From sequence record OP292654.1: a DNA stretch of 64,000 bases; one strand, 5' to 3'. The position numbers and the translations under genes were made by a program. The notes under the pieces were generated by a model, which made no database searches, was not told the DNA's origin, and saw only the letters and a list, made by a program, of their open reading frames with translations. The stretch's first letter is position 1. Each line of letters opens with the position of its first letter. Positions 3,765 through 48,470 of the stretch are shown piece after piece.

Positions 3765-4026
3765 CCATATCATTGCTAAGAAAGTAGTGAATGAGGCAAA
3801 AAGTGCTGGTGGTATTCTTCTCACTGCTTCAGGTGAAGATGAAAGTACTCATGCTGAAGTACTACAAATCGGACCAGGTTTCCTGTCTGAACTTAATGTA
3901 GGTGACATTGTTACTTATGTTGAAGGTGACAAACGAGTTCATTCTGAAAAGATTGATAATGAAGATATTCTTATTATGCCAGAAGATTGTATTCTAGGTG
4001 TAATTGAACAAGATAAAGGTGAATAA
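3742..4026 (+). CDS. groES: co-chaperonin GroES
   Basis: MKIRPVHNHII...KSAGGILL...VLQIGPG...VGDIV...ILGV. Confidence 0.9.
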   Translation: MKIRPVHNHIIAKKVVNEAKSAGGILLTASGEDESTHAEVLQIGPGFLSELNVGDIVTYVEGDKRVHSEKIDNEDILIMPEDCILGVIEQDKGE

Positions 4027-4027
4027 C

Positions 4028-7363: not shown

Positions 7364-8056
7364 ATGAATATTGCTGAAAAGTACTATTGGATTACCAATC
7401 ACCCGAAATATGTTCCATTTGGTCACGATGCTGTTATTGAAATTACCCCTCATATGGTTTGTCCAGAAACCAACCGCATTGAAGATTTGGCATTGCTCAA
7501 TACCAAATTGCGTTTTTGGGTTGAGTTAATGATCCCATATGAAGATAAAGAAAATAACTATCACGGTTTCGCCCATGAATGGGAACTGGATTGCGGCGGT
7601 GATACATGGGAAGAAGCAGTTGAAACATTGTACCAGTTAGTACTGGAAAAGTACGGTGACTATGGTGATGATGAACTGGAAGAACACCGTAGGGTTTGGT
7701 TAGAAGAATCTAAAATCAAAATTCCAGGATATATTAGCATTTACGATAAACTGATGGGAGATTTAGATAACTTCAAAGCACCAGGCCCAGATTTATCTAA
7801 ACCAATCGTTAAACTTAAAGATTATGAAATCGAAAGTTTTAAAGAAGATGTTGAACATCTTGGAGTTCTGCTGCCTGTCCTTCAGGCAAAGTTGGCTAAT
7901 CCAGAACTAACTATGCAAGACTATAGTGATATTGAATTACAAATCACCTGTGTTGACCACGATTTGGAAGTAGCGAAACTCAGTCTAAAATATGGATATA
8001 ATGTAGAAGTATATGGTATCAGGGATGAAAATAACGAAACTGATTCGCATACTTAA
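7364..8056 (+). CDS. hypothetical protein
   Basis: ORF track, SD GAGG. Confidence 0.75.
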   Translation: MNIAEKYYWITNHPKYVPFGHDAVIEITPHMVCPETNRIEDLALLNTKLRFWVELMIPYEDKENNYHGFAHEWELDCGGDTWEEAVETLYQLVLEKYGDYGDDELEEHRRVWLEESKIKIPGYISIYDKLMGDLDNFKAPGPDLSKPIVKLKDYEIESFKEDVEHLGVLLPVLQAKLANPELTMQDYSDIELQITCVDHDLEVAKLSLKYGYNVEVYGIRDENNETDSHT

Positions 8057-14460: not shown

Positions 14461-17154
14461 ATGGCTAAAAAAATTCTAGGAAATTTACAGGTTGGAAGAT
14501 ACGCTTCTTCTCAAGGGAGAAACTTAACAACTTCAGTTGAGGGAGCAAACTTTAGTACTTCAGGAAGTCTAGAGATCGATTCTTACACCCAAGATGAATT
14601 CAACAAAATAGTTAGTGTATTACCACTATCTCACTATGGTTCCTTTAACTACATTCCTGCTGGAGTTTACGGTTCTTATGAAGGTGCGAGTGATGTAATA
14701 AGCTACAGATACCGTAAACTATTCGTCGAAGATGACGGAACATTAATGATTCTACGTCCTGGTACTAATGGTGCTAAACGTGGCGTTTACTATTCATATC
14801 TGAATAATATTTTAAGTACTACAACATTATCAACATCAATCAATACAAATAAAGAATACAAACCAGGTTATTTTGGTTCAACTTATACAGCAAAGTACTT
14901 GTATGCAACTGACAATAGAGTAACTTCTGGTGTGGCGTTTAATTCATCAAATGACCCATATGTATTTGTATCATGGATGAATGGTACATTAAATGACACA
15001 CAGCACACTGGTATTCTAATACCACTAGCAACAATAGTGCCGAGTGGTACAGTGCGTTTTGTAATGACTGGTAATACCAACATTTACTTCTTTACTGAAG
15101 TCAGTACTGGTTCAAATTTATCATTTGAAATTAGGTCAATTCCTATTTCTCAAGTACAAGCAGGTGGATCATATACGATTACAAATTATGCTACTTGGAG
15201 TACTACCGGTTTCTATGGTACAGTTACTAATAGTACTGAATTAACGATTATACCATTACTTCAAAGCACTAATGCTGCTGATAATCCTTATATGTTAATT
15301 CCAGCAGCAACAACCAGTGCTAATCCATTTATGACAGGTGTTGATATATACGCTGCTCAAAATAGTGCTGGAACAATTAGACTCAGAGTTGTGGGTGATG
15401 CTTGGTGTACAACACCACTTAGAAATGTACGCCCTAAACATACATTTAGTTTCTTATTGAACATGACAGCTAAGACTGCGACTCTTGAAGCTGGTAATAT
15501 TGCTCCATTGACAATTACAGATCCAGGAAGTGGAACAGTACTGAATGTATCTGGTTCAACCTATTCAACAGACCCAATTCCAACTATTAATACCCAACGT
15601 TCAAACTACGTAATGGGATATTATTATTTTGATAATGGTACAACAATAGCTATTGGTTCTCCGAACCAAGGTGATACTTTAATAAGTCGTGGTAATTATC
15701 CAAATGCAACATCAGTATATGATACCTTACAGGTTCGAAGTCATCCAACAAGCATAAATTATACTCAATCAAATATGAACTATCAATATGGTTCTCCAGT
15801 TGGTTCTAATTTAATGAGTATGGAATGGTTGCCTAATAATAGATATAGAGTAAATTCTCTTATCGGTTCATGGGTTAACTCAGTTAACCAATATGTTCCT
15901 GGTGCGACATATACATTTGATTCTGTATCGTTTGGAACAATTCAAGGTTATCAACCAACAGTCAATCGTTACAGAACTACATACGATAATGACCATCGTT
16001 TCTTCATTAGCACTATAAATGGAAGTACAGTTACAACCAATGGTGGAATGTTCATTGAGAATACTAAAGTTTCATCTGGTGTAACATATGATGGTGATAT
16101 GAATAGTACTGGTTCAATGAGTATTGCTAATTCTCTGTTAACATCATTTAAAAATTCACAACTGTCATCAAGTACAATTACGTTGGATTCATCAAATGTA
16201 AGTAATATTACACTGTATGTTCCACAACAAACTGACTGTCCTGCTTTTGCTTTAATTACAGCAGTTACCACAACACAAACAAGTTATGTTAAAGTGGTGG
16301 AAGTAAATGTTAATACAAGAACTGGAACCATTACAACTTTAACATTAAAGAGATTAGTGTATGAAGATTCTGGTCAATTTGGTTCAATAGCACAACCTGC
16401 TAATTATGGTGTAGTTCAAGCTAGTACTGGATTAACAATTTATGATGCTGGAACATTCTACTTCATAGGTGGTGCTGATCCATACATTTATAAAACTACG
16501 GGTGATAGTAACGCAATTACTTTTCGAGCTAAAGTGACTAAAAGTACTGGTCAAATGGATAGTTTTATTCCAACTAGTACATATCAGAATCATGTTCCTA
16601 ATGTGGGTTCAATGCCTTTTGCTGCACCAGGTATTGGCTTTGGATATATTGATTATGTTGCTTCATGGGCTGATGACGCTGTTAGATTAATATTCCGTTC
16701 ATGCGGTACTACACTAGCTCAATATAATGCGTGGACTGATGTTGGTTCTCCAATTCTATTAGCATCACAAGATGTTGCTCAAGGGTTTATAATTTACTTT
16801 ACAGAACCAACCTCGTTGCTACTGAGTGGAAAATCGTTCACATTGCCAGTACAAAATATTGATCTGACAACAGTGAAAGCTAACCCAGCTAACAGTACTT
16901 TTTATATCTACGCAGTAATGCAAGAAGGATTAGCAAAATATATTGCTACGGAAACTGTAATTGCTGAATCAGGAACAACAGCATATAACACATTCTGGAT
17001 TGGTACAGTAACAACCAATGCTCTACAAATTGAAACAATTAACATTTTTAAACGTAGTCGTTTAGATGTGTTCGGCACTTCACTAGAAGCCGCTGGTTCT
17101 TCAATCCCTGTTAGTTATGGTCTACCTACTGGTTCAGGAACAATCAACTGGTAA
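14461..17154 (+). CDS. large Ser/Thr-rich virion structural protein, paralog 1 (fibre/appendage-like)
   Basis: Shares LRPGTNG and QDVxQGF..YFT..ANP.N.TFY motifs and terminal Trp with the next two ORFs; preceded by CATAAATA late promoter. Confidence 0.7.
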   Translation: MAKKILGNLQVGRYASSQGRNLTTSVEGANFSTSGSLEIDSYTQDEFNKIVSVLPLSHYGSFNYIPAGVYGSYEGASDVISYRYRKLFVEDDGTLMILRPGTNGAKRGVYYSYLNNILSTTTLSTSINTNKEYKPGYFGSTYTAKYLYATDNRVTSGVAFNSSNDPYVFVSWMNGTLNDTQHTGILIPLATIVPSGTVRFVMTGNTNIYFFTEVSTGSNLSFEIRSIPISQVQAGGSYTITNYATWSTTGFYGTVTNSTELTIIPLLQSTNAADNPYMLIPAATTSANPFMTGVDIYAAQNSAGTIRLRVVGDAWCTTPLRNVRPKHTFSFLLNMTAKTATLEAGNIAPLTITDPGSGTVLNVSGSTYSTDPIPTINTQRSNYVMGYYYFDNGTTIAIGSPNQGDTLISRGNYPNATSVYDTLQVRSHPTSINYTQSNMNYQYGSPVGSNLMSMEWLPNNRYRVNSLIGSWVNSVNQYVPGATYTFDSVSFGTIQGYQPTVNRYRTTYDNDHRFFISTINGSTVTTNGGMFIENTKVSSGVTYDGDMNSTGSMSIANSLLTSFKNSQLSSSTITLDSSNVSNITLYVPQQTDCPAFALITAVTTTQTSYVKVVEVNVNTRTGTITTLTLKRLVYEDSGQFGSIAQPANYGVVQASTGLTIYDAGTFYFIGGADPYIYKTTGDSNAITFRAKVTKSTGQMDSFIPTSTYQNHVPNVGSMPFAAPGIGFGYIDYVASWADDAVRLIFRSCGTTLAQYNAWTDVGSPILLASQDVAQGFIIYFTEPTSLLLSGKSFTLPVQNIDLTTVKANPANSTFYIYAVMQEGLAKYIATETVIAESGTTAYNTFWIGTVTTNALQIETINIFKRSRLDVFGTSLEAAGSSIPVSYGLPTGSGTINW

Positions 17155-17166
17155 AAGGATTTACAT

Positions 17167-19920
17167 ATGGCATATGTCATTAAAGGTGATGTGAATGTCA
17201 CCGGAAATATAACAGTACAAAGTAAAAATGTAGGTACTAGTATCACAACCACTGGTAATAGTACTGTTTACTTGGCTGATACATCTGGACACGTAGACTT
17301 ACCTTTACCGTCCAAATCTGATGTAGATTACATTTTAAAACAACTTCCTCTATCACAATATGGTGCGTTGAATAACAACGCACCTGGTGTGGCAGGAACA
17401 TTTGATGGTGGTAGCACACTGGCATACTATTCAGCTATGCCAGTTCTATTAGAAGCTGATGGTTCTTTGGTTTATCTTCGCCCAGGAACTAATGGTAGTT
17501 CTGTAAATTATTACTACACTTATATAAACAATCCAAATGCTTCAATGCAACCATTCACCACTATTAATTCTTATTATACTGGTTCGTGGAAGACAATTTT
17601 GTTTCATGATAGTGATGCAAAAACATGCTTAACATTTGAAGAAGTGGGGAATAATGTACTTCATTTAGTACTTACGAATGGTACTTTAACTAAAGCAAAT
17701 CATCAATCAGCAACTATTGCTCGTAACCTTATACCGTACACTATTATGAATTCTATAGTTATTGGTTCATATATGTACATCGTTACACTTTATTCATCAG
17801 TTAATGATCTTAATAATCCAACTGGAATATACTATAATGGCAATGATCCATTTGAATTTGTTTTATACAGAATACCTGTTTCACAGATTCAGACAGGTTC
17901 AGTAACAACGGTTGAACAAATATCTGGAATAACCGGTAATACACTATATGGTGATTCACAAGGTTCACAAGGTTATATTCGTATAGCAGATTTATGGCAA
18001 AGCACAATTGAAAGTGGTAATAAATCTTGGATTAGATACAGTTCAGCACTCAATGGAGTTGCTGGATATACATACACAATTATTGGTTCAGTAAAATGTA
18101 TTTTTGATGGAACAAATTTAATTATCTCTATGAACAATAACACATTTGTTAGAAATAATTCATTACGTTCTGATACTAGACCAGCTTTTAGAATTTTCTA
18201 TAATGTTAGTACTAAAGCATTTACTACAGATTTAACAACTGGTTCGCCTCTAGTTGCTACTGGTGGTGTTAGTGGTAATATCACATGGACACATCCATAT
18301 TCTGTAAACAGTTCAAATATATTCGGTAATGGTACAGCGGTATCAGATAGTTTAAATGGAACTTGGTATATTACTGAAAATGGAACACAATATTACATTC
18401 GAGAAAAATATGTTCTTAGTGATAACTATTACGTATATTCTGGTAAAATTAATAACTTCACTAATAAAGTAGATGCTTATAATGTTCGTGGTAGAACATT
18501 TAATAGTGTGGTACAATATAATGTATACGCAGATTATGCTTCACGTGTTGGTGATCAACTGATGGGTGGGATTCCTATTAGTACTAGTAGAGTGTTGTTT
18601 AGCGGTACTGGTACATATGAAGGTACAAAATATTTGAAATATTCTAAAGGTATTTCTGATATTGGCACAACAAGAACATACACATATAATTCATTTAAAC
18701 GAGGTACTATTACTGGTTATGGACCACAAGCTACTCGCTTACCATTACCAACTGCTACTGAAAATGCAACATATGGTGGTGTATCATATTGTGATTCTTC
18801 AGGAAATGTAACATTCTTTGGAACTGTATTCGTTGAAGGCTCTGTATTATCCGCAGGTTATCAATTGAATCCAACAACTTTGTTGTATGATAAAACTATT
18901 TCTATTTCAAATACGGTACTAACTAATTTAAAAAATAGCATATTATCAAACCAAGGATTATCACCATCTTCTAGTACTATTGCGTTGTATTATTCTCCTA
19001 ATACTTCATATTTTGCGAGTGTTGCGTGTGTAACCAGCCTTAATTCTGGTGGTGGCGGTAATATGATTTTAGCATCAGTTAACTGTACTGCTGATACTTC
19101 TTCAGTACTGACGGCAACCCTAAACACTGTAATTAATAATTATAGTGATGCTTCATTTATATCAACATCAACAAACGGTACAGCAACATCAGAGATGCGT
19201 AGACATGGTGGTTTGTGTGTAGTTAATTATAGTGATTTTACATATGTATCTTTACCACACTTAATAAATGTTGGAGTGGCAGGTGATTCTCGTGAATATT
19301 CATACGCTGGTGTTAAATCAGGAAATACTTTAACTTCATTGATAATGTCTAATAGCTATCATGCACCAGACATTTCACCAGGTTCTCGTGAATATAGCTA
19401 TATCCCTAACTATGGTTTTGGATATTATGTATTCCAAGACACAGATCAAGGAACAAAACTTATATTCAAACGTTGTGGTAGTACGCTATCAGAGTTCAAT
19501 TCAAATATGGCTTCTGGTACAGGAACAGATACAGTAATTCTAGCTCAAGATGTTCCTCAAGGATTTTATTTGTATTTTACTGAAGTAACTCCATTATTCC
19601 TAAGTGGGCAATACTTTGATGTTCCTATTACAGCAATTGACTTAAGTACAGTACAAGCTAACCCAGGAAATACAACATTCTATGTTTATATAAAATTGGC
19701 GTTAGGAACTCCATCTTATGTAGTAAGTACTACAACCTTACCTGAAACTGATACGCAAATGTTTTTAGGAACAATTGTCACGGATGGTACAAAAGTTGCT
19801 ACGTTAAATATAAAGAAGGTTTCTAGACTAGACACATACAGGCCAAGTACTACCCAAATTGGTTCTGCGTTCCCTGTCAGTACTGGTAATCCTACACAAA
19901 CAGGAACAATTACCTGGTAA
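17167..19920 (+). CDS. large Ser/Thr-rich virion structural protein, paralog 2
   Basis: Same N- and C-terminal motifs; SD AAGGA. Confidence 0.7.
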   Translation: MAYVIKGDVNVTGNITVQSKNVGTSITTTGNSTVYLADTSGHVDLPLPSKSDVDYILKQLPLSQYGALNNNAPGVAGTFDGGSTLAYYSAMPVLLEADGSLVYLRPGTNGSSVNYYYTYINNPNASMQPFTTINSYYTGSWKTILFHDSDAKTCLTFEEVGNNVLHLVLTNGTLTKANHQSATIARNLIPYTIMNSIVIGSYMYIVTLYSSVNDLNNPTGIYYNGNDPFEFVLYRIPVSQIQTGSVTTVEQISGITGNTLYGDSQGSQGYIRIADLWQSTIESGNKSWIRYSSALNGVAGYTYTIIGSVKCIFDGTNLIISMNNNTFVRNNSLRSDTRPAFRIFYNVSTKAFTTDLTTGSPLVATGGVSGNITWTHPYSVNSSNIFGNGTAVSDSLNGTWYITENGTQYYIREKYVLSDNYYVYSGKINNFTNKVDAYNVRGRTFNSVVQYNVYADYASRVGDQLMGGIPISTSRVLFSGTGTYEGTKYLKYSKGISDIGTTRTYTYNSFKRGTITGYGPQATRLPLPTATENATYGGVSYCDSSGNVTFFGTVFVEGSVLSAGYQLNPTTLLYDKTISISNTVLTNLKNSILSNQGLSPSSSTIALYYSPNTSYFASVACVTSLNSGGGGNMILASVNCTADTSSVLTATLNTVINNYSDASFISTSTNGTATSEMRRHGGLCVVNYSDFTYVSLPHLINVGVAGDSREYSYAGVKSGNTLTSLIMSNSYHAPDISPGSREYSYIPNYGFGYYVFQDTDQGTKLIFKRCGSTLSEFNSNMASGTGTDTVILAQDVPQGFYLYFTEVTPLFLSGQYFDVPITAIDLSTVQANPGNTTFYVYIKLALGTPSYVVSTTTLPETDTQMFLGTIVTDGTKVATLNIKKVSRLDTYRPSTTQIGSAFPVSTGNPTQTGTITW

Positions 19921-19932
19921 AAGGAAAATTAA

Positions 19933-22674
19933 ATGTCGAAAAAAATAATGGGAGACTTGAATGTTTCCCGTAATACAATCGTGAATAGCAAGAATGCTAT
20001 TCGTGACATTAACAATATTACCGCTGATCAGAGTGGGAACATAGCGTTCCCACTTTATACTAAAGAAGAAATTGACCGTATTACAGCAGTATTACCAGTT
20101 TCTCGTGTAGGTACAATGGACTATCTACCAATGAGTATTAACGGTTCATATGAAGGTGCTACAACATATTATGCGTCGAAGCGAATTCTTCCAGTTATTA
20201 TTGAAGACAATGGAACACTAGTTTATCTACGTCCTGGCACAAATGGCAGTACTGATGGATATTATTACTGCTATACTGCTGATGCTCGTAATGTAGCTGA
20301 TATGGCTCCAGTACTTTCAAATACAAAATATGTTCCATCATTCTTTACTAGTAATCATAAATTGATTGATTTTGTTGGAACGAAAGCAAGTGAATTGCTA
20401 TTCATGAAAACAAATAATGGAACTAATGATACATACACAATTGGTCTAACTAATGGTACATTGAATAGTGTTTCACATCAATATGTTGAATTCAACAGAA
20501 CATTATTAGGCAGTACTGATCCTCAATATGCTCATATTGTTGGTAGTACGATTTACATTTGGTGTATTGATTCATACTCAACCACAAGTGCTTTTGATAT
20601 TTCATTATATACTATAAGCGTAGATAATGTTCGCAATGGCGTTACGACTTCATTAGCTAGAGTAACTGGTTTTAGCGGTTCAACGATTTATGGAACATCG
20701 GTTAGTGCGTCAAATACTGTTAGAATTGCTCAGCGTTATATTAGTACTTCAAGTTCAGATAATCCATTTTTGCTATCTGATGCTAATACAAATACTAGTT
20801 TATTCCAGTTGAATACAGATGGTGTTATTCAGGCTGCGTCTAATCCAGACGGTACATCAATTAGAGTAGCATTATTCCATGCTTGGGCGATGAATGCTAC
20901 AGGTATAGCTGGTGTTCAATCACATTGGGGATTAAGTTTAACATATAATATCAGTACTAAAACCTATGTACTAGATAAACCATCTGCTGGACCAATAACA
21001 GTTTCATCAAATGGCAGTTCATTTACTTATACAAACCCATACAACGCAACAATGGAAAATATGAATGGATTCCCAAGTGATTCACAGGGCAATGTTCCAA
21101 CTATATTCCAGACAGCAGATGGGATTGTATTCAGTACGGTGGCTCGTTATATTACATCTCCACAACATAAAATAACTCGTGCTACAATTAATTCATATAC
21201 TAATGCATATGATTCATTGAATTTAACAACACGTACATTAAGTTCTGTTACATTGAAATATGTCGATCCAGTTTATGGTTCAGCATTAGGCGAAAACCTT
21301 ATAAATCCAGTAGTTATTTCTCCTACTAGAATTATGCTTTCATGTAGCGGTAATGATTCTAATGGTTCATTCGGATTTGATGCGAGAGTATATGCTGATA
21401 TCGGTTCAACCAGAACTTACACATATAACTCAATTGTTAGTGGAACCACAATTAATGGATATGCACCACAATCAACTAGAACTAGAGTAGATAATTCAGA
21501 TTTCAAATATACTGGAATGATAACATTAGTTGCCGCTGATGGTACAACACGTTCATATGGTTCATCTTTTATTGAAGGATTAACTAAACCGGCTGGTGGA
21601 TTACTCAATACAAGTACTTTTACATTTGGTACAGGTTATACAATGACAAATACATCATTGTTAACTGCTCTGAAAACCCAAATGATAAATGCTGTTACTA
21701 TTACTGGTACAGTTTTGGAAAGTAAAATTGTTCTGTATTATGTTCCAGATAGTGATTATGGAAAAAGTATTGCTATAGTCTCATTGAGAACTGATACTGT
21801 TGATGGTTCAGGATATAGTGCTCATGTTATTGTTAGTACTGTAGATGTTACATTAAGTGGTCAGAATATTACTGCTCTAAATGCTGCGTCTTCTACAATC
21901 AATGGAGTTAATTCTGGTGTAATTACAATAAACTTGACATATTTTGCTCGTATGGCTGGATTAACTATTGCCAAATATAGTGGATTCTCATATATTGGAA
22001 TTCCTGCCTTATTCAATATGGGCACAAGTGGTAATGCCACATTTAGGTCAATGCTGGGTAAACTCGATGCGTCAAATAATATTGTATCATTGAGAGCAAT
22101 AACTTCTCAGTATTTGAGCGGTGGTACTTCATACGAAGTTGGTGTTCTTCCTGGATTTGGCTTTGGATTGTTTGAAAATGGTGATGTTACTGATTATCAA
22201 ACTAAGCTAGTTTATAAGTATCATGGTACATCTGAAGCTAACTTAGATGCGTTGATAGCTGATCCAACATCATCACCAATAGCACGATATGTGGTTGCTT
22301 CACAAGAAGTTCCACAAGGTTTCAATGTGTATTTCACTCAAGAAATTCCAGTGTTCCTTCATGGTTCTTACTATGAAATGCCAATACAAACGATTAACCT
22401 AACATCTATTCAAGCAAACCCAGCTAACACTACATTCTATTTGTATATAACAATAGTTGAAGGTGCTGCTGTTTATCAGATTAGTACTACACTTCTTTCC
22501 GAAGAATTGTATAGGGTTTATATCGGTACAATTGTTACTGGAGCATCATCTATAACATCAATAAGTACTGAAAAAGTTACACGATTCTTAACTTACAGGC
22601 CAAGTACAACCCAACGTGGTTCTGCTATTCCTGCGAGTACTGGTGTACCTTCAAGTACTGGTACACGTTGGTAA
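19933..22674 (+). CDS. large Ser/Thr-rich virion structural protein, paralog 3
   Basis: Same N- and C-terminal motifs; SD AAGGA. Confidence 0.7.
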   Translation: MSKKIMGDLNVSRNTIVNSKNAIRDINNITADQSGNIAFPLYTKEEIDRITAVLPVSRVGTMDYLPMSINGSYEGATTYYASKRILPVIIEDNGTLVYLRPGTNGSTDGYYYCYTADARNVADMAPVLSNTKYVPSFFTSNHKLIDFVGTKASELLFMKTNNGTNDTYTIGLTNGTLNSVSHQYVEFNRTLLGSTDPQYAHIVGSTIYIWCIDSYSTTSAFDISLYTISVDNVRNGVTTSLARVTGFSGSTIYGTSVSASNTVRIAQRYISTSSSDNPFLLSDANTNTSLFQLNTDGVIQAASNPDGTSIRVALFHAWAMNATGIAGVQSHWGLSLTYNISTKTYVLDKPSAGPITVSSNGSSFTYTNPYNATMENMNGFPSDSQGNVPTIFQTADGIVFSTVARYITSPQHKITRATINSYTNAYDSLNLTTRTLSSVTLKYVDPVYGSALGENLINPVVISPTRIMLSCSGNDSNGSFGFDARVYADIGSTRTYTYNSIVSGTTINGYAPQSTRTRVDNSDFKYTGMITLVAADGTTRSYGSSFIEGLTKPAGGLLNTSTFTFGTGYTMTNTSLLTALKTQMINAVTITGTVLESKIVLYYVPDSDYGKSIAIVSLRTDTVDGSGYSAHVIVSTVDVTLSGQNITALNAASSTINGVNSGVITINLTYFARMAGLTIAKYSGFSYIGIPALFNMGTSGNATFRSMLGKLDASNNIVSLRAITSQYLSGGTSYEVGVLPGFGFGLFENGDVTDYQTKLVYKYHGTSEANLDALIADPTSSPIARYVVASQEVPQGFNVYFTQEIPVFLHGSYYEMPIQTINLTSIQANPANTTFYLYITIVEGAAVYQISTTLLSEELYRVYIGTIVTGASSITSISTEKVTRFLTYRPSTTQRGSAIPASTGVPSSTGTRW

Positions 22675-24375: not shown

Positions 24376-24681
24376 ATGGAATATATTACCCCTGTCCTTG
24401 TTAACCGTCACAAAGGCGAGTTTGACATTTACATCGGGCGTGGTACAATGTGGGGAAATCCGTTTCCCCGCGACCCAGGGGCGGGAATTTCTCGCCAAGT
24501 TTCTATACAAATGTACCGAGAGTACTTGTACGAATGTCTGGAGAATGGTACAATAACAACCGATGACGTTTTAAGCCTTAGTGGGCTACGTATCGGATGC
24601 TCTTGTGCTCCGCTGGAATGCCACGGAGATGTAATAATCGAAGTTTTCAACACAATAGTTGAAATGCTTAATGAAGATTGA
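24376..24681 (+). CDS. DUF4326-like protein
   Basis: DIYIGRGTMWGNPF...LRIGCSCAPLECHGDVI. Confidence 0.8.
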   Translation: MEYITPVLVNRHKGEFDIYIGRGTMWGNPFPRDPGAGISRQVSIQMYREYLYECLENGTITTDDVLSLSGLRIGCSCAPLECHGDVIIEVFNTIVEMLNED

Positions 24682-26967: not shown

Positions 26968-27092
26968 CAGAAACGAATCTATCCCAAATACCAATTCACT
27001 ACAATACAAACAATCACAAGGTAGGCTTGAAAGAAAACAAGTAAATCCAGTTATTGTTGTATTAGATGGAAATTACCTTAAAAGGAAAAATA

Positions 27093-28343
27093 ATGGCAGA
27101 TAATCATTTAGACAATCTTATTGTCCGACACCTGGCAGGTTCCCAGGCTTACGGTACTAGTACTCCAACTTCTGATACCGATTTTCGTGGTATCTTCATG
27201 GCTGATAAAGAATTCATCTTGACTCCTTTCTTCACTGTTAATGAAGTATCGGATGCTAAAGAAGAAGATACTAAGTATTACGAACTAAACAACTACATGA
27301 AACTATACCTGGATGCTAACCCAAATATCCTTGAATCACTATGGGTAGATGAAGCAGACATTCAGGTAAGTACTGGATTATATGATCACCTTCGTGCGGC
27401 ACGTGCTGATTTACTGTCTTCTAAGATCGCATTTACCTATACTGGTTATGCTCATAATCAGGCTAAACGAATGAAAAATCATCACGGTTGGATGGATCGT
27501 GAACGTACTGGTGTACGTATTCTTCAGGAATTCTTTGACGCATTCCCATGTGAACAAACTATTCAGTGGATTGGTGATACATTCCCTGACTATGTTATGG
27601 GTCTTCTGAATGTCGAATCTGGTCGTGGTAAGTATATTAAAACTTCTATGGATTTCCATTTCGAAAAACAACTTCGTAATGCGTCTCTACAGATGTTGAG
27701 TACTCAACCATTGAAACAGTATCATTTCATCAAGCTGGTTCATAACTATTTTGATCACCAAGTACTGGATCGCGATTTTACTATCCTGAATTATAATCAC
27801 GGCTATCAGTTAGTTCCTTATGGTGATAACACCTTTGGTGTTGTTCCAAAAGAAGGTGGTCGCACGTTGAATGATGATGGTAGTATTCATCGTATTGACA
27901 CTACTAACCTATCACTTGAAGAAGTAAAAGAACAGCCTAAGCTGATCGTAAAATTCAACAAGGAAGAATACGAAAAAAGTTCTGACAATCGTCATAACTA
28001 TCATACATGGAAAGCAAATCGTAACGAAGCACGTTCTGAGTTAGAACAACTGAACGGCTACGATACTAAACATGCTATGCATGTCGTTCGTCTAATGCGT
28101 ACTGCTGAAGAAGCATTGAGTACTGGTGAGGTTCACGTTAAACGACCTGATGCCGAAGAACTCCTTGCAATTCGTAATGGTGCGTGGACGTTCGAAGAAA
28201 TGATGGAGTACTGGACAGAAAAAGATCAGTACATCCGTGAAGTACTATATAAACAATCGGTATTACCTCGCACTCCAGATATTAAAAAGGCAGCTAAACT
28301 GCTGATTGAACTCCGTGAGATGCAGTGGTATGGAATCAAATAA
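27093..28343 (+). CDS. RlaP-like Pol-beta nucleotidyltransferase with large internal insertion
   Basis: LAGSQAYGTSTPTSDTDFRGIF; C-terminal GYDTKHAMHVVRL; start ATG 27093 after SD AAGGA. Confidence 0.8.
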   Translation: MADNHLDNLIVRHLAGSQAYGTSTPTSDTDFRGIFMADKEFILTPFFTVNEVSDAKEEDTKYYELNNYMKLYLDANPNILESLWVDEADIQVSTGLYDHLRAARADLLSSKIAFTYTGYAHNQAKRMKNHHGWMDRERTGVRILQEFFDAFPCEQTIQWIGDTFPDYVMGLLNVESGRGKYIKTSMDFHFEKQLRNASLQMLSTQPLKQYHFIKLVHNYFDHQVLDRDFTILNYNHGYQLVPYGDNTFGVVPKEGGRTLNDDGSIHRIDTTNLSLEEVKEQPKLIVKFNKEEYEKSSDNRHNYHTWKANRNEARSELEQLNGYDTKHAMHVVRLMRTAEEALSTGEVHVKRPDAEELLAIRNGAWTFEEMMEYWTEKDQYIREVLYKQSVLPRTPDIKKAAKLLIELREMQWYGIK

Positions 28344-28759
28344 TGAATATTTTAGACCAATTTAAAACTGCTCGTGAAGTATATAACACTCTACTTAATG
28401 AACATCATGACGAAATCATGAAGGAGTTCATTAAAGAATTGGGTATTGAACATGCTGGACTAACCAATGGAATGATTATTGGTTACACTCCACAATGGAA
28501 TGATGGTGAAGCATGTGAACATAGTAGTGATATTCAGATTCGCTACATGGACAATGATATTCGTGATTTCATTGAAGATGTTCCTGAAGATTATGATGAC
28601 AATAATCTTAGCAATGAAGAAGGTCGTGCCATTGAAATTAAACTTGCTGTACTAGATGAAATTCTGGTTCACATTTACGGTACTAACTATAAATTTGGAT
28701 TTATTATCCAAGATGGTTCAATCACCATTAAACATGAAGATTATGATTGCGGATACTAA
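28343..28759 (+). CDS. hypothetical protein, NDG-C-H paralog 1
   Basis: GYTPQWNDGEACEHSS ... YDCGY*. Confidence 0.75.
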   Translation: MNILDQFKTAREVYNTLLNEHHDEIMKEFIKELGIEHAGLTNGMIIGYTPQWNDGEACEHSSDIQIRYMDNDIRDFIEDVPEDYDDNNLSNEEGRAIEIKLAVLDEILVHIYGTNYKFGFIIQDGSITIKHEDYDCGY

Positions 28760-28760
28760 T

Positions 28761-29258
28761 ATGACACTGTTTGAACAATTTCAAGATCTAAAAACTAAAT
28801 CTGACGCTGCGGCGAACGAACTATCTAAATTTCTTAGTGCTAATAAACGTGATATTTTGAAGGATGTTGCTGCTCAGCTAAAAGCAATTCCTGGTATGAA
28901 CAAGCTAGTAATCTATGGTTATACTCCAGGATTCAATGATGGTGACGCTTGTACCCATAGTAGCGAGTGTTTGTTTCGTGATTACCACTTCAGTGAATTT
29001 GCTGAATATGAAGAATATTCATATTTCAGTTTTATGAACATGCCTGAAGAAATTCAGGAATCCGGTGAACCTTGGAATTGGGAAGGTTTTGAAAATGTAA
29101 ACACCTATTCTGATGATGATGAACAAAAAGTACGTGAACTGGTACAACTACTGGATTATTTGGTTGAACAAATTGAATATACTGATTACCTAGTTATGTT
29201 TGATTTCACAACTGAAGAAACAACTATTACATTTGAGGAATATGATTGTGGGCACTAA
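28761..29258 (+). CDS. hypothetical protein, NDG-C-H paralog 2
   Basis: GYTPGFNDGDACTHSS ... YDCGH*. Confidence 0.75.
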   Translation: MTLFEQFQDLKTKSDAAANELSKFLSANKRDILKDVAAQLKAIPGMNKLVIYGYTPGFNDGDACTHSSECLFRDYHFSEFAEYEEYSYFSFMNMPEEIQESGEPWNWEGFENVNTYSDDDEQKVRELVQLLDYLVEQIEYTDYLVMFDFTTEETTITFEEYDCGH

Positions 29259-29700
29259 TGCTTTTGATACCTACATCGAACATCGTAAGTATCTTTCAGA
29301 TAATATTGATCGCATTATCATAGATGGTTTAGATAAATTGAAAAAGTTTGATGGTCTAAACAAAATTATCATTATTGGGTACACTCCGTCATTCAATGAC
29401 GGAGATCCATGTGAACACTGGAGTACTCCGTATTACGACGATGATTTGTATGAAATTGCTGATGACAATCGTGAATTCTTAGGTCTTCCAGAAAACTTAG
29501 AATATGATGATTATGAAGATTATCTTGATGAAAATCCGATTAATACAATCAAAGAAGAAGATGATGATCAAATTAGGCTAATCATTAGCCATCTTGAAGA
29601 TCTTCTTGAAGAACAAAATGATACTAACTTTAAAGTTTATATTGATCTAACTGGTCAACATCCAACTATTGAAGTTCAACATTACTACTGTGGATATTAA
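29242..29700 (+). CDS. hypothetical protein, NDG-C-H paralog 3 (start uncertain)
   Basis: GYTPSFNDGDPCEHWS ... YYCGY*. Confidence 0.75.
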   Translation: MIVGTNAFDTYIEHRKYLSDNIDRIIIDGLDKLKKFDGLNKIIIIGYTPSFNDGDPCEHWSTPYYDDDLYEIADDNREFLGLPENLEYDDYEDYLDENPINTIKEEDDDQIRLIISHLEDLLEEQNDTNFKVYIDLTGQHPTIEVQHYYCGY

Positions 29701-32343: not shown

Positions 32344-32607
32344 ATGGACGACAATGATGTATATTACCGTATCATTCGCTCTAGTGATGATGATACACTA
32401 TTGACAATCTGTTGTATGCAATGGTTCGATGAACACGATTATGATGAAACTCGTTTTCTGTGTGCTAAAGGTACTAATAAACGTTTGATGTTTAGTTCTG
32501 AGGGAAAGGCAATTAAGTTCCTCAATGATAACATTAAACCAGAAAACATCGTTCCAGAATATCGTGTACAGACACAAACGTACAACGATAATTTCTACAA
32601 AGATTAA
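32344..32607 (+). CDS. hypothetical protein
   Basis: ORF track, SD GAGG. Confidence 0.7.
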   Translation: MDDNDVYYRIIRSSDDDTLLTICCMQWFDEHDYDETRFLCAKGTNKRLMFSSEGKAIKFLNDNIKPENIVPEYRVQTQTYNDNFYKD

Positions 32608-32613
32608 AAATAA

Positions 32614-32643
32614 TTGAAACAGAACTAAAAGTTCTGGTATAAT
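32614..32643 (+). promoter_or_regulatory. sigma70-like promoter, extended -10, 18-bp spacer class
   Basis: TTGAAA-N18-TATAAT with TGG; near-identical ends to promoter at 41634. Confidence 0.8.
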
Positions 32644-32646
32644 GTA

Positions 32647-33121
32647 GGTGAAGAATCTGAAAAGGTCTTCACCGTTCTTAAAACTCTGATTGATCCATTT
32701 ATGGAATAGTTTGAACCTGATCTCGTTGAAAAGTAAACAGCAGTTGAGTAGTTCAATCAGTACGAGTGCAATATATTTTACCCGTTAGGAGTTGGCATAG
32801 TTTGTACCACCCACGGCAATGCGGCACTTTAAATGTGTTCTTGACATGAACGCACCAGATAGGCATTAGAGGCATACTCACCTGTTAAAAGGGAGATATT
32901 CTACGGAATATCAATAGTACCTGTTGCTGAATTAGCAAGTACTATATGCGGAGCAATGTGAAAACTCCGACCGTTGTATGCGACTGTAGTAACTGGAAAC
33001 CGGACAACCCGCCAGTGTTTACTACAAATTTTAGACAATATAGATCCGTCCAAAATTTGAGTAAAATCTACAAATTCAGATGGTAAGACTACCACCGTCA
33101 GCTTAGTTCTGACTTTTTTTT
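32647..33121 (+). ncRNA. candidate large structured non-coding RNA of unknown family
   Basis: No + strand ORF >=60 aa in the ORF track; promoter upstream; about ten stems incl. C(UACG)G tetraloop; ends in GTCAG/CTGAC hairpin plus T8. Confidence 0.55.
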
Positions 33122-33266
33122 CGTTCCCCTTTGCGGGGGGATGCAAATAGATCAACAAACCCCGTCAGTATAAACAGTGTTAAACGTATTAAATAGTTTA
33201 AAGGAATTGAGTTAAGTACGAACAACGTGAGTACTAACGAAAATTCTTGACTAACGGAGTTAGGCA

Positions 33267-33632
33267 ATGGAACTAGCAGACAATCAGTATTTCAACAGTA
33301 CAATGTTGAGATATTTTCTAATTTTAATTGAGTACGGTTCTTATCTAACAAGACAGAATCGAATATACCTACCAAGTTTAAATGATGACAAAGCATTAGG
33401 AATCTATGAAGCAATGAAAGAAATTGCTCTAGAAGATAATTGCGTTATCTGTTTAAATTTTGATCCTCATTTCCCCGTTCATAAAACAAATAATTTACAT
33501 TTCATCAGTACTAATACCATGTATTTGTCTGAGATTCCTTGTGAATTTCTTTTTGTTTATGGAACAGTCGAATATGAGAAAATCAAAAAAGTTTGTGATT
33601 ACTACAACCCTAAGTTTATTTTTCACTGCTAA
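33267..33632 (+). CDS. hypothetical protein
   Basis: ORF track; TAAATA at 33190 upstream. Confidence 0.65.
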   Translation: MELADNQYFNSTMLRYFLILIEYGSYLTRQNRIYLPSLNDDKALGIYEAMKEIALEDNCVICLNFDPHFPVHKTNNLHFISTNTMYLSEIPCEFLFVYGTVEYEKIKKVCDYYNPKFIFHC

Positions 33633-40323: not shown

Positions 40324-41589
40324 ATGGCTGAACTCGTAACTGAAGGTCGTCGTCTTGTAACTGTTCGCAAAATCAATGCGATCAATCCAATTCCGAATGC
40401 TGATGCTATTGAAGTAGCAACCATTGACGGTTGGAACGTCGTTATTAAGAAAGGTGAATTTGCGGTAGGCGACTACTGTATGTTCTTCGAAATTGATTCA
40501 TTCCTTCCTGCGAATGATGGACGTTTCGCTTTCCTGGCTGGGAAAGGTACTAAAACTGATGAAAACGGAGTAGAGCGTATTCGTCTACGCACGATCAAAC
40601 TTCGTGGTCAGATTTCTCAGGGTTTGGCTCTGCCAATCAGTGCGTTTTATGAAATCTTCTACGCACTGAACCCTAATGTTCGTTACTTCCTGGCTCCTTC
40701 GGCAAGTGAAGTACTTTCCAATTCTGTTGAAATTCTGGCAGACCTGGAAGATAACCGTCAGGGTCTGGAAAATTTCATCAATGTCACTAAGTACGAACGT
40801 CCTGATGAACGTAATGGTGGCACTGGTGCTGGACGTGCGAAAACGGCTGGTAGCTTCCCAATCTTCATTCCTAAAACTGATGAAGATCGTATCCAGAACG
40901 TTTTCGGAAAGTACAGTCAGACTATGAAAGGTGTACCATTCCGTAAATCTTTGAAACTGGAAGGTTCAAGTCAGACTATTGCTTTCGTAAGCAATCCTGA
41001 CTTCTTCGTAGAGAAGATTGATGATGAACTTAAAGTGTTCAATGAGGAAACTCAAACACTGGAAGTCGCAGAAGTCATTCCTTATCCGTTCCAGTGGGAA
41101 GAAGGTCAGGGTATTGTGTGTTCACGTAACCTCGCACTGAAGTTCGATGAAAGTTCGGCATTCTGGAAAGCAGCACTGAAGGACGACATTATTGAACGTC
41201 TGCGTCAGTACTGTACCGAGAACAACCGCCAGCTTGCTATTCAGGGCGAATGTATGGGTCCAGGTATCCAGGGTAACATCGAACAACTGGAAGAACATCA
41301 GTTCTACGCATTCCGTGTGTGGGATATTGATGCTCAGAACTTCCTGGATGATGCGGAATTCATCGAACTGACTCGTATCCTGGGTCTGACTGTAGCACCG
41401 CAAGGTGAAATTGTGTACTTCTTTGATGAATACAGTACTATCAAAGAAGCTCTGGATTCAGCAGATCATGCGAGTATCGTAGCTCCGATTTGTGAAGGTG
41501 ACGTGTACAAAAGTACTGTAAAAGTGAATGGACAGACTATTCACTTCAAAGTCATCAATAACAAATATCTTCTGAAAGTAGAAGATTAA
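40324..41589 (+). CDS. RNA ligase, Rnl2/DRB0094-like, with N-terminal OB (tRNA-binding-like) domain
   Basis: PIPNADAIEVATIDGWNVV, IKLRGQISQGL, PKTDEDRIQN, motif I KLEGSS, GECMGPGIQGN, EGDVYK, FKVINNKYL. Confidence 0.85.
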   Translation: MAELVTEGRRLVTVRKINAINPIPNADAIEVATIDGWNVVIKKGEFAVGDYCMFFEIDSFLPANDGRFAFLAGKGTKTDENGVERIRLRTIKLRGQISQGLALPISAFYEIFYALNPNVRYFLAPSASEVLSNSVEILADLEDNRQGLENFINVTKYERPDERNGGTGAGRAKTAGSFPIFIPKTDEDRIQNVFGKYSQTMKGVPFRKSLKLEGSSQTIAFVSNPDFFVEKIDDELKVFNEETQTLEVAEVIPYPFQWEEGQGIVCSRNLALKFDESSAFWKAALKDDIIERLRQYCTENNRQLAIQGECMGPGIQGNIEQLEEHQFYAFRVWDIDAQNFLDDAEFIELTRILGLTVAPQGEIVYFFDEYSTIKEALDSADHASIVAPICEGDVYKSTVKVNGQTIHFKVINNKYLLKVED

Positions 41590-41633: not shown

Positions 41634-41663
41634 TTGAAACGAGCCGGAGAAATCTGGTATAAT
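41634..41663 (+). promoter_or_regulatory. sigma70-like promoter, extended -10, 18-bp spacer class
   Basis: TTGAAAC...TCTGGTATAATGTA, as at 32614. Confidence 0.8.
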
Positions 41664-42030: not shown

Positions 42031-43545
42031 ATGTCAGCATTTAAAAACGCAGTAAACAACGTAAACACCACAGCTTCACAAAACCGTTCTACAACCGCAA
42101 ATGGTGCGGCATCACTGAAAAGTACGCTGAACCCACTGGTAGATCTGTTCTTCATGATCGGTTCCCTTCGTGGAAAAGATCTCGGCGTGTACAAAAGTTC
42201 ATTTGACGCAGCATACGCAGCTAACCCTACGCTTGCTCTCCAGATGATTCTTTGGGCACGTGACATTCGTGGTGGTGCTGGTGAGCGTAATACCCCTCGC
42301 GAACTTCTGAAGTACCTTGAAGTTAAGCATCCTGAAGCAGTACTGCGTGTAATTCCAGTACTGGCAGATTTCGGTCGTTGGGATGATCTTCTGATCTTCA
42401 AAACTGCCGCTGCTAAAACTCTGGCTTACCAGACAATCGCAGAAGCGTTAACCACTGGTAACGCACTGTGTGCTAAGTGGATGCCTCGTGTTTACAAGTT
42501 CAAGAAGAACGCTCAAGGTGTTGTTGATATGAACACAGAAGCGAACAAAAACCGTGCTGCGAACAACAAAATCGCTCGTGAGATCATGACCACCATGAAT
42601 ATCAACGAACGTGCGTATCGTAAGCTGCTTTCATCTCTGAGCAACACCGTTGAACAGAAGATGTGTGCGAACGAGTGGGAAGAAATCGAATATAGCAAGC
42701 TGCCATCAGTTGCTAGTGCTCGTTATCTGCCAGCGTTCATGAAACGCGATGAAGCTCGTTACCGCGAGTTCCTGGCTTCAATCGAAAAAGGCGAAGTGAA
42801 AGTAAACGCTGGTGCTCTGTATCCATACGATGTAACAACTCGTTTGGCTAATGGTTCTGCCGCTGAAACCCTGGGCGTTGCTCAATGGGAACAGTTGCGT
42901 AACTTCATGGGCGACAACAAAGCTATCCCAATGGTAGATACTAGTTCTTCAATGAACTGTTCTGCGGGTTCTACAGGCATGACTTGTATGAACGTTGCGA
43001 TTTCTTTGGGTCTGTACATTGCCGATAAGCAAGAAGGTGCGTTCAAGGACTTGTTCCTGAACTTCAGTACTCAACCACGCATGTTCGAACTGAAAGGTTC
43101 TAACATTGCTGAGAAGTACCGTGACCTGATGGGCTATCGTGCTGGTCAGTTCTGGGGTGGTAGCACCAACATTCAGGCGGCATTCCGTGAAGTACTGCGT
43201 GTAGCGAAAGCTCAGCAAGTACCAGCAGAACAGATGCCTAAGAACTTGATTGTTCTGTCTGACATGGAATTCAACCCAAGCAATGCGGGTGGTTGGAACG
43301 CTACGGCGTACAACTCTGCGAAAGCAGACTTCGCAGCAGCGGGTTATGAACTGCCAACTATCGTCTTCTGGAACCTTAACGCACGTCCGGGTAACAACCC
43401 TGTTCGTTTTGACCAGAACAACGTAGCTCTGGTAAGTGGTTTCTCTCCAAGCGTTCTGGAAGCAATTCTGAGCGGTGAGGATGTAGATCCAGTGAAGGTT
43501 ATGCTTCGCGTAATCGACGCACCACGCTATCAAGTACTTGGTTAA
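42031..43545 (+). CDS. TROVE/vWA-type protein (DUF2828, Ro60-related)
   Basis: RDIRGGAGER, GRWDDL, CAKWMPR, LYPYD, MIDAS-like VDTSSSM, LSDMEF, VFWNL. Confidence 0.8.
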   Translation: MSAFKNAVNNVNTTASQNRSTTANGAASLKSTLNPLVDLFFMIGSLRGKDLGVYKSSFDAAYAANPTLALQMILWARDIRGGAGERNTPRELLKYLEVKHPEAVLRVIPVLADFGRWDDLLIFKTAAAKTLAYQTIAEALTTGNALCAKWMPRVYKFKKNAQGVVDMNTEANKNRAANNKIAREIMTTMNINERAYRKLLSSLSNTVEQKMCANEWEEIEYSKLPSVASARYLPAFMKRDEARYREFLASIEKGEVKVNAGALYPYDVTTRLANGSAAETLGVAQWEQLRNFMGDNKAIPMVDTSSSMNCSAGSTGMTCMNVAISLGLYIADKQEGAFKDLFLNFSTQPRMFELKGSNIAEKYRDLMGYRAGQFWGGSTNIQAAFREVLRVAKAQQVPAEQMPKNLIVLSDMEFNPSNAGGWNATAYNSAKADFAAAGYELPTIVFWNLNARPGNNPVRFDQNNVALVSGFSPSVLEAILSGEDVDPVKVMLRVIDAPRYQVLG

Positions 43546-47354: not shown

Positions 47355-48470
47355 ATGAAAAAGTATATCGTAGGTGGTTTTGTACGTGATAAGATTCTTG
47401 GTCTTCAACCTAAAGACAAGGATTATGTACTGGTCGGTGCTAAACCAAAAGATATTGAATATCTTCAAAGCATTGGTTATAAACAAGTGGGTGCTGACTT
47501 CCCTGTATTCCTGTCACCAGATGGTGATGAATACGCACTTGCCCGTATCGAGCGTAAAACTGGTACTGGTTACGATGGTTTCACCGTTGAAACTCAGGGT
47601 GTTACATTGGAACAAGACCTGTTTCGTCGCGATTTGACGATTAACGCCATTGCGTGGGATATTGGTACTAAAACCCATGTTGATCCATACAATGGTAAAG
47701 AAGATCTAAAGAACAAGGTACTGCGTCACGTATCTGATGCGTTCAAAGAAGATCCTCTGCGTGTTCTGCGTCTGGCTCGTTTCAAGGCTCGTTACTCCGA
47801 TTTCACGGTACATAAAAGTACTGATGATATGGTTCGTAAGATGGTCAAAGATGGTGAAATCAATCATCTGACTAAAGAGCGTGTTTACGTTGAATTTGAG
47901 AAAGCATTCAGTGAAGCGAAACCAAGTATCTTCCTGAAGTACTTGAAAGATATTGGTGCGTTGACAGTACTGATTCCTGGTTTTGAGGCAACTCAAAAAG
48001 AACTGGAACTGATTGATCAAATTGTAAATACAAGCTCAGATTCACACCGTGATGAATTTATTTGGTCTGTTATTCTTTCTAAGTTAACACCAAATAAAGA
48101 TTATGTTGTTGGTGGTATTAAACTGCCAGCACGTTTTGTGAAGTTCAGTAACTTCATTAAAACTCATTCTGAAAGTTTACTGAAATTCCGTAAAAAGAAA
48201 CCGGAAGAAATGGTAGAACTTTTCAGTACTATGAACATCAAAAATAACGGTGGTGAAGATTTTCTTTACAAAGTCACTGAGTACTTCTTAATTCGTCGCG
48301 AGATGGATAATGAACTCGAAGACCTTATTGTAAAGGTATTTGATCGCTTTACTGATGCTCCAGTTGGTGACATTGAAGAAATGGTAAAAACTGGTAAACT
48401 GGAAGCGAAGGATATTCGTAATCACGTTAAGGGTATCCAGACCACCGAAATCAAAAAGATGTTCGCATAA
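47355..48470 (+). CDS. cca: class II tRNA nucleotidyltransferase (CCA-adding enzyme), no HD domain seen
   Basis: YIVGGFVRD, DKDY, DLFRRDLTINA, EDPLRVLRLARF. Confidence 0.92.
   Translation: MKKYIVGGFVRDKILGLQPKDKDYVLVGAKPKDIEYLQSIGYKQVGADFPVFLSPDGDEYALARIERKTGTGYDGFTVETQGVTLEQDLFRRDLTINAIAWDIGTKTHVDPYNGKEDLKNKVLRHVSDAFKEDPLRVLRLARFKARYSDFTVHKSTDDMVRKMVKDGEINHLTKERVYVEFEKAFSEAKPSIFLKYLKDIGALTVLIPGFEATQKELELIDQIVNTSSDSHRDEFIWSVILSKLTPNKDYVVGGIKLPARFVKFSNFIKTHSESLLKFRKKKPEEMVELFSTMNIKNNGGEDFLYKVTEYFLIRREMDNELEDLIVKVFDRFTDAPVGDIEEMVKTGKLEAKDIRNHVKGIQTTEIKKMFA

Follow-up and report, generated by a model that had tools for sequence, protein, structure and literature searches.

A new family of large structured RNAs with evenly spaced paralogs in Xanthomonas phage XbC2 and single copies in enterobacterial chromosomal islands

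Very few large, highly ordered RNA families are known from bacteria and phages, and each of them has opened new biology. ROOL, GOLLD and OLE are RNAs of 400-800 nucleotides (nt) with many conserved helices and pseudoknots, which are often borne by phages or prophages, are transcribed from their own promoters and were for a long time of unknown function. Here we describe an RNA of this kind in the genome of Xanthomonas phage XbC2 (OP292654.1), a Mimasvirus-like jumbo phage of 367,901 bp. We analyzed a stretch of 64,000 nt of this genome, called the window in the following; window coordinates, which are used unless stated otherwise, correspond to the record coordinate minus 62,000. The RNA is located in a gap of 659 bp free of coding sequences (CDS), at 32608-33266, between two small open reading frames (ORFs) on the plus strand. 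It resembles ROOL, GOLLD and OLE in all of the features named above, but the Rfam models of these RNAs match it neither in sequence nor in structure. Furthermore, those RNAs are usually encoded by a single copy, whereas the family described here is represented by five paralogs at even distances in each genome and shows a conserved segment past an internal terminator. We know of no other case of a large ornate RNA that occurs as five evenly spaced paralogs and is also borne by chromosomal islands.

Another described system that invites comparison is the transcript-primed replication of phage T4. The T4 origins oriF and oriG minimally consist of a middle-mode promoter and a downstream unwinding element, and the origin transcript forms an R-loop which primes unidirectional synthesis of the leading strand (PMC3016281). 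Several such origins are spread over the T4 genome, many of them within late-gene regions, and origin fragments allow plasmids to replicate in infected cells (PMC3016281).

Between Mimasvirus and Eneladusvirus phages, identity in the gap amounts to 82-95% and is higher than in the flanking ORFs, and portions of the gap sequence are still detectable in Asteriusvirus, in Munch-like phages and in XaC1. An nhmmer profile matched positions 32615-33172 with an E value of 1e-150. For analysis of the fold, 28 sequences (alignment A2) were folded to a consensus, in which 31 of the 64 predicted pairs show compensatory double changes. A curated model of 93 pairs, which includes a pseudoknot and the hairpins proposed in an initial annotation of the window, was compared with controls in which the pairing partners were slid by 1-3 columns, and with shuffles. 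In the curated model 89.9% of the cells are paired (39-44% in the slid controls), both-sided changes occur in 47 pairs (9-21 when slid) and the covariation score is 0.41 (at most 0.13 when slid), a value reached by none of 500 shuffles. Many of the exchanges are C-G to U-G and are compatible with the plus strand only, which points to an RNA (or single-strand) structure of this strand. The single-sequence fold is better than that of shuffled sequences on both strands (z = -3.0 and -3.6), so that the strand is settled by covariation alone. The observation of the RNA is far beyond chance, and the gap almost certainly holds a real structured-RNA family.

A protein-coding function was considered for the same region. 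No CDS is annotated in the orthologous gap of XbC2, GAP32, CBB, BF, Munch or PBECO4, and close orthologs have stops or frameshifts that disrupt the small ORFs of either strand, so no conserved ORF was found. The median longest ORF per copy has 36 codons, and its position varies. A mini-ORF following GGGGGGAUG was dropped as its frame and length vary among the paralogs in the alignments. The idea that the gap is a small-protein gene (e.g., 32946-33086 on the plus strand or 32901-33158 on the minus strand) or a pseudogene has a negligible probability: some annotators call small CDSs here in Yersinia phages and Kaldavass, but the ORFs are broken by stops and frameshifts in GAP32, BF and Yersinia phages despite a DNA identity of 82-89%, and the substitutions are compensatory in helices instead of being concentrated at third codon positions.

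None of the 4227 covariance models of Rfam 15 matched the window at gathering thresholds. The families covered include ROOL, GOLLD, OLE, RNase P, transfer-messenger RNA (tmRNA), 6S, group I/II introns, Y RNA/YrlA, HEARO and EAR. With permissive filters, the region 32500-33350 gave chance matches alone, with E values of 0.7-10 and far under the gathering scores, and ARAGORN detected no tRNA or tmRNA gene in the window. A search of the literature on jumbo-phage non-coding RNAs, on ornate RNAs and on the phage genera concerned revealed no description of the element. The non-coding RNAs ncRNA002 and ncRNA004, identified by RNA sequencing in the related phage PA5oct, are not homologous to the RNA and therefore no expression evidence can be borrowed from them. 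The RNA is a new family, absent from Rfam 15 and from the searched literature.

These results bear on most claims of the initial annotation. It had described the gap as devoid of a credible ORF, had found no match to tmRNA, RNase P, tRNA or intron cores, and had taken G-U pairs as a sign of structure at the RNA level; all three statements agree with the data given above. Its proposal of an undescribed large structured phage RNA with its own promoter is likewise backed by the covariation and by the absence of matches to Rfam, to tRNA or tmRNA genes, to ORFs and to the literature. The chain of stems it had listed is present with one exception, and most of the stems show compensatory changes. The exception is the outer pairing UGUAGUAA/UUACUACA at 32985-33026, which is better replaced by the long-range helix UGUAG/CUACA of the 3' core, covarying in every paralog. 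Two further claims had to be revised. The RNA was thought to be bounded by the T8 hairpin, which gave a length of ~475 nt, but conservation and RNA-level pairing reach at least 33172 (~526 nt) and the hairpin is missing from two of the five XbC2 paralogs. It was also treated as a single locus, but each genome has five such paralogs, and further copies occur in bacterial islands. The coordinates of all features are given in the table.

Features of the structured RNA (window coordinates) and positions of its five copies in XbC2 (record coordinates)
Feature	Position	Strand	Description
Promoter	32614-32643	+	-35-like TTGAAAC, spacer of 17-18 nt, extended -10 TGgTATAAT
Conserved structured RNA, copy II of five	32647-33172	+	~526 nt; predicted transcript start ~32650
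5' hairpin GGUGAAGA/UCUUCACC	32647-32673	+	sequence varies, pairing maintained; missing from some paralogs
5' three-way domain	32686-32765	+	closing helix CUGAUUGA/UCAAUCAG (32686-93/32753-60), UCCA/UGGA hairpin, inner helix 32720-32742
Invariant UGAGUAGUUCAAUCAGUACGA	32745-32765	+	part of 5' three-way domain
Domain closed by GUGC/GCAC	32766-32828	+	GUGC/GCAC 32766-69/32824-27 with CCGU/ACGG 32782-85/32813-16
Hairpin UGUGUUC/GAACGCA	32834-32854	+	followed by invariant GAUAG 32858-62
Three peripheral hairpins	32895-32969	+	32895-32912 (UACG loop), 32914-32945, CGGAG/CUCCG 32949-32969
Pseudoknotted 3' core	32968-33072	+	GUUGU 32973-77/ACAAC 33004-08 crossing ACUGG/CCAGU 32992-96/33012-16 and UGUAG/CUACA 32985-89/33068-72
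Movable module	33026-33058	+	stem AAAUUUU/AAAAUUU and GAC/GUC around loop AAUAUAGAUCC
Box 1 ACCACCGUCAG	33091-33101	+	direct repeat of box 2
Terminator-like hairpin GUCAG-N7-CUGAC and U8	33097-33121	+	equivalent in copies II, III and IV; none in I and V
Conserved 3' extension past U-run	33126-33168	+	C/U-rich arm paired with near-invariant G5-6 run 33135-40 (G6 here)
Remainder of 3' extension		+	small hairpin 33140-53, CAACAAA, box 2 ACCCCGUCAG 33159-68
Less conserved tail with hairpins	33173-33266	+	ends in hairpin with ribosome-binding site of ORF 33267-33632
XbC2 copy I	record 28,738-29,283	+	
XbC2 copy II (studied copy)	record 94,615-95,172	+	
XbC2 copy III	record 175,121-175,684	+	
XbC2 copy IV	record 259,176-259,760	+	
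XbC2 copy V	record 338,959-339,482	+	

In a consensus scan, the promoter in front of the RNA reached 11 of 12 points for TTGAAA-N18-TATAAT with an upstream TG, in line with the strong promoter first noted there. It belongs to a class that combines a sigma-70-type -10 with a phage-specific upstream box. The motif GAAAC-N-TGnTATAAT is retained in the copies examined, with XbC2 copy IV giving no exact match in the pattern search. On the minus strand the scan revealed promoter-like sites that are only weak and unconserved, and no conserved antisense promoter was noticed, although no search aimed at one was made. Further GAAAC-N17-TGgTATAAT promoters occur in the window at 7975-8002 and at 41636-41663, the latter immediately 5' of a TROVE-like ORF (42031-43545). 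In phage CBB, the same promoter class was called 'divergent RpoD-like', with the motif TGAAACG (PMC5259590).

The 5' hairpin has equivalents of different sequence in GAP32 (GGGGAAGA/UUUUCCUC) and PBECO4 (AGGUGACA/UGUCACCU), as seen in the alignments. Helices 1-3, which form the three-way domain, are 100%, 76% and 96% paired with 3-4 covarying pairs each. The following domain (helices 4-5, 100% paired) contains the invariant blocks ACCCGUUAG and CACGGCAAUGCGGC (32812-32825), and it provided the anchors for the exact-pattern scans; in other paralogs a variable hairpin is inserted into this domain. In helix 6, the hairpin at 32834-32854, all five pairs covary and 97.9% of the cells are paired. 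The peripheral hairpins correspond to helices 8-13 and show covariation in comparison with Munch-type copies; paralogs I, III and V carry other modules instead. In the 3' core (helices 14-17), a helix scan placed ACAAC in the loop of ACUGG/CCAGU, with UGUAG/CUACA closing the core. These helices are 98-100% paired with 12 covarying pairs, and CGACCGUUG and ACAACCCGC are invariant. The movable module is relocated in paralogs I, III and V, as the alignments show. Past the U-run, helix 19, formed by the C/U-rich arm and the G-run, is 97.6% paired, with C-G/U-G exchanges that are valid solely as plus-strand RNA. Boxes 1 and 2 follow the pattern A-Y-C-(A)-N-Y-GUCA-R and vary in parallel among the paralogs (CC/CC, UC/UC, GU/GU, A/A, last base G or A), which may possibly reflect either gene conversion, the direct repeats being close to each other, or a recognition step common to both. 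Pairwise and helix scans for a complementary partner of the CGUCAG boxes gave only an invariant GAUG/CGUC pairing without covariation. At the end of the tail, the loop of a conserved hairpin, CUAAC-GGA-GUUAG, contains the ribosome-binding site (33245-33257) of ORF 33267-33632.

BLAST identified the RNA at three to five 'places' per phage record, and further copies were recovered by exact-pattern scans of IMG/VR and by the nhmmer profile. Within the window there is no self-similarity, and the paralogs of XbC2 all lie outside of it. Each of the five XbC2 copies occupies its own CDS-free gap of 660-770 bp. Promoter type, helices and ~100 invariant nt are common to the paralogs, which specify RNAs of 0.5-0.6 kb each; their peripheral modules differ. 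Positional orthologs were found in Mimasvirus, Eneladusvirus, Asteriusvirus, Munch-like phages and XaC1, and the same positions are filled in CBB, GAP32, BF, Yersinia phages and uncultivated relatives, so the paralogs must be old. Related jumbo phages have about five evenly spaced copies each, all on the same strand. In XaC1, a distant jumbo phage whose genome similarity to XbC2 is ~21%, one full copy (117.4-117.9 kb; L160:972-1433) corresponds in position to copy II and lies directly after an HNH endonuclease gene and 5' of a Dps-like gene.

The gaps between the XbC2 copies amount to 65.9, 80.5, 84.1, 79.8 and 57.7 kb. For five random points, the probability of a minimum gap at least that large is 0.002. 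Two IMG/VR contigs show the same spacing pattern (P 0.001-0.002), but the genomes are collinear and therefore these tests are not independent trials. The XbC2 genome is non-permuted and its record counts one terminal repeat of 17.6 kb (PMC11273794). Downstream of four of the five copies the genes have the same orientation as the RNA. Copy III adjoins the baseplate hub gene and is located between late genes of the minus strand. Its orientation against the flanking late genes and the non-paralogous neighbours argue against a leader or operon role. The explanation as a duplicated operon leader was ruled out, since the proteins flanking the CBB copies are non-paralogous. Another stretch without annotated CDS, 1.57 kb in length, is found at record 332530-334102 of XbC2 (L148:2531-4103), outside the window.

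Copies of the RNA also occur in bacterial chromosomes. A strict pattern scan of the genomes of 185,579 species revealed two true matches (nhmmer E 1e-98 and 1e-77), and BLAST against 5,426 complete E. coli genomes added two more. The hosts are Citrobacter, E. coli and an Enterobacteriaceae metagenome-assembled genome (MAG), and in each case a single copy lies in an island of ~10 kb. In Citrobacter amalonaticus P55 (JBALIF010000001.1, 505.8-515.1 kb), an integrative island of ~9.5 kb splits the ppdD pilin gene. It contains, in this order, a large serine recombinase, the RNA, an ORF of 165 aa, a convergent CI-type repressor, a Cro-like helix-turn-helix protein, three unknown ORFs, a small resolvase and the type IV restriction enzyme GmrSD, and it resembles a satellite or defence island. 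In the MAG, an A+T-rich island begins beside thiM and the RNA faces a related CI-type repressor. The island of E. coli LR-29-1 is located beside ffs and consists of the RNA, a protein of 118 aa (L159:14081-14437), which is 73% identical to the Citrobacter island protein, a resolvase and a DuOB/DUF488/DUF4326 trio; it also has iteron-like direct repeats TTATCGATCGTT (L159:13010-13075), 5' of a membrane-like ORF of 257 aa.

The island RNAs retain the core invariant blocks, the boxes and the phage-type promoter, which in the Citrobacter island forms a tandem (2 matches, 0.04 expected). They are followed by GUGAGUACU hairpins resembling the tail hairpins at 33173-33266. The ORF scans of two islands revealed no recognisable Rep protein, primase or helicase, and the RNA had no match in the plasmid collection. 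The sole similarity between island proteins and the phage loci is DUF4326. In the window, a DUF4326-like stretch at 24403-24657 is 38% identical to the E. coli island DUF4326 protein.

With regard to function, we lean towards a role in which the RNA acts where it is made, i.e., a position-bound (cis) role. It is possible, and we propose it tentatively from the comparative analysis as our first choice, that each copy marks a transcript-primed replication origin. This reading is suggested by the even spacing, by the strict co-orientation even against local genes and by the retention of all five positions, together with the phage promoter with its sigma-70 -10, the G-run past the pause or termination site and the capture by islands without recognisable replication genes. 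A promoter with a sigma-70 -10 that drives an untranslated transcript, as expected for a T4-type origin, is found here; its assignment to the 'middle' class is derived from the CBB paper. According to the proposal, RNA polymerase would start at the phage promoter and the folded 5' and central domains would hold the nascent RNA away from the template, while a persistent hybrid would form between the two CGUCAG boxes, where the hairpin/U-run and the near-invariant G5-6 block are located. Forks would be launched over the 368-kb genome from five co-oriented copies at intervals of 58-84 kb, co-directional with most transcription, and an infecting jumbo phage would replicate the small chromosomal islands that bear one copy. 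More doubtful is the wider scenario that this new class of large folded RNAs defines the origins of Rak2-like jumbo phages, and that islands captured one of them with its promoter, so that the phage activates, replicates and perhaps spreads the island; a satellite or defence island would then rely on an RNA origin stolen from the phage.

Several points weigh against origins of this kind. To our knowledge, no origin transcript has ~19 conserved helices, a pseudoknot and ~100 invariant nt, and such order is typical of ribozymes, ribonucleoproteins and ornate RNAs that act free. The GC skew is monotonic with no inflection at the locus; such an inflection is rare in T4-like genomes. No distinct unwinding element was identified, and the tail at 33169-33220 is A+T-rich, as is the whole genome with 35-37% GC. 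The hairpin/U-run is missing from paralogs I and V, and iteron-like repeats are present in the E. coli island itself. Finally, loss of closely spaced duplicates by recombination could partly explain the even spacing.

Alternatively, the RNA might be released at the hairpin/U-run or by processing and act in trans as an ornate RNA, either as a ribozyme, the core of a ribonucleoprotein, a self-assembling scaffold of the ROOL/GOLLD kind or a decoy that diverts a host nuclease or defence factor. The presence of five genes would then provide dosage or slightly differing specificities, and the island copy would be a moron or a mimic that interferes with the phage. We consider this nearly as likely as an origin. 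It is consistent with the size, the pseudoknot, the many invariant junction nucleotides and the swappable peripheral modules, and also with the cassette layout, in which the RNA comes with a promoter of its own, joined by a terminator in copies II-IV and in the island copies, and stands in unrelated gene contexts whatever the orientation of the neighbours. The phage genome is moreover rich in genes for RNA repair and processing. However, a free RNA would not be expected to show even spacing (P about 0.002) and strict co-orientation, and the five positions are kept across genera instead of having collapsed to one gene. Conserved structure continues 3' of the terminator, which two copies lack altogether, and ROOL, GOLLD, OLE and the other Rfam models are unmatched. 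Action in trans agrees best with the structure and least with the positional pattern.

The conserved structure past the internal terminator indicates that the polymerase must often pass this site, which fits a role of the RNA in the control of transcription in cis. Here, the nascent RNA would bind its polymerase in the manner of HK022 put or of EAR, either for terminators to be ignored or for a choice between stopping and reading on at the internal hairpin/U-run. The copies would head long rightward units, and read-through in the islands would reach either the gene of the convergent CI-like repressor or an operon further downstream. The co-oriented genes after four of the five copies agree with this, as do the convergent CI-type repressor genes at which the RNA points in two islands, and the phages depend on the host RNA polymerase and carry many terminators. 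Such control is in our view likewise nearly as probable as an origin. Against it, known antiterminator RNAs comprise 70-120 nt compared with ~526 nt here, copy III would run antisense through late genes, ordinary GAAAC-type promoters occur without the RNA, and the antitermination and leader families in Rfam were unmatched at the thresholds used.

It is very improbable that the RNA is a Y-RNA-like partner of the phage TROVE-like protein, as the initial annotation had suggested: the DUF2828/DUF7788 (TROVE-like) ORF lies 9 kb downstream with a promoter of the same class, but the five copies are dispersed over 368 kb and unlinked to this gene, no Y-RNA/YrlA model matched, the RNA is ~5x the size of a Y RNA (~100 nt), and the Citrobacter and E. 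coli islands have the RNA but no TROVE-like gene among the ORFs scanned or annotated. Even taken together, the TROVE partner and the coding gene claim a very small share of the probability, and a further remainder goes to roles not listed here.

The surroundings of copy II are rich in RNA repair and tRNA functions. The window encodes a tyrosyl-tRNA synthetase (4004-5296), the anaerobic ribonucleotide reductase NrdD (10344-12149), the RNA-repair nucleotidyltransferase RlaP (27066-28343), an RNA ligase (40324-41589) and an enzyme of the CCA-adding/poly(A) polymerase type (47355-48470). Three tandem ORFs of ~900 aa each (14461-17154, 17167-19920 and 19933-22674) are possibly paralogs. Between 40001 and 44000, over the RNA ligase and TROVE-like genes, the GC content peaks at 0.41-0.45 compared with ~0.36 elsewhere, and this part may be of foreign origin.

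The family is distinguished by five anciently diverged copies at fixed, even positions in phage genomes of 350-385 kb and by exceptionally strong covariation support. If it is locus-bound, as an origin or in polymerase control, it would explain how replication or transcription is organised in giant T4-related genomes, and it would reveal a new form of phage-island parasitism. If it works as a free RNA machine, a new candidate ribozyme, ribonucleoprotein or scaffold is at hand. Either way, each genome of this clade gains an annotation for ~3 kb of 'empty' DNA, and relatives infecting E. coli K-12, e.g., Sharanji (host MG1655), make the RNA family directly testable.

Among the described systems that act in cis, the HK022 put RNA and EAR are similar in that a promoter-proximal structured RNA, which there acts on its own polymerase, is followed by terminators. 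They differ by their length of 70-120 nt and their simple two- or three-stem folds, and copy III described here does not head a co-oriented operon. The similarity to T4 oriF/oriG includes the context of a T4-related replisome and a phage-specific promoter with a sigma-70 -10 and an untranslated transcript. As in T4, there are several elements per genome, some of them in late-gene regions, and the element is transferable to another replicon (PMC3016281). In contrast, ~100 bp suffice for a T4 origin and no RNA fold is conserved, while here a tertiary-looking structure of ~526 nt is conserved. ColE1 RNA II belongs to a plasmid, is present in one copy, is controlled by the antisense RNA I and has no sequence similarity to the phage RNA. 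It is nevertheless similar as a folded primer of ~550 nt, in which upstream folding decides on hybrid formation near the 3' end, and a G-run is reportedly involved in the formation of this hybrid, a finding attributed to Masukata and Tomizawa in 1990.

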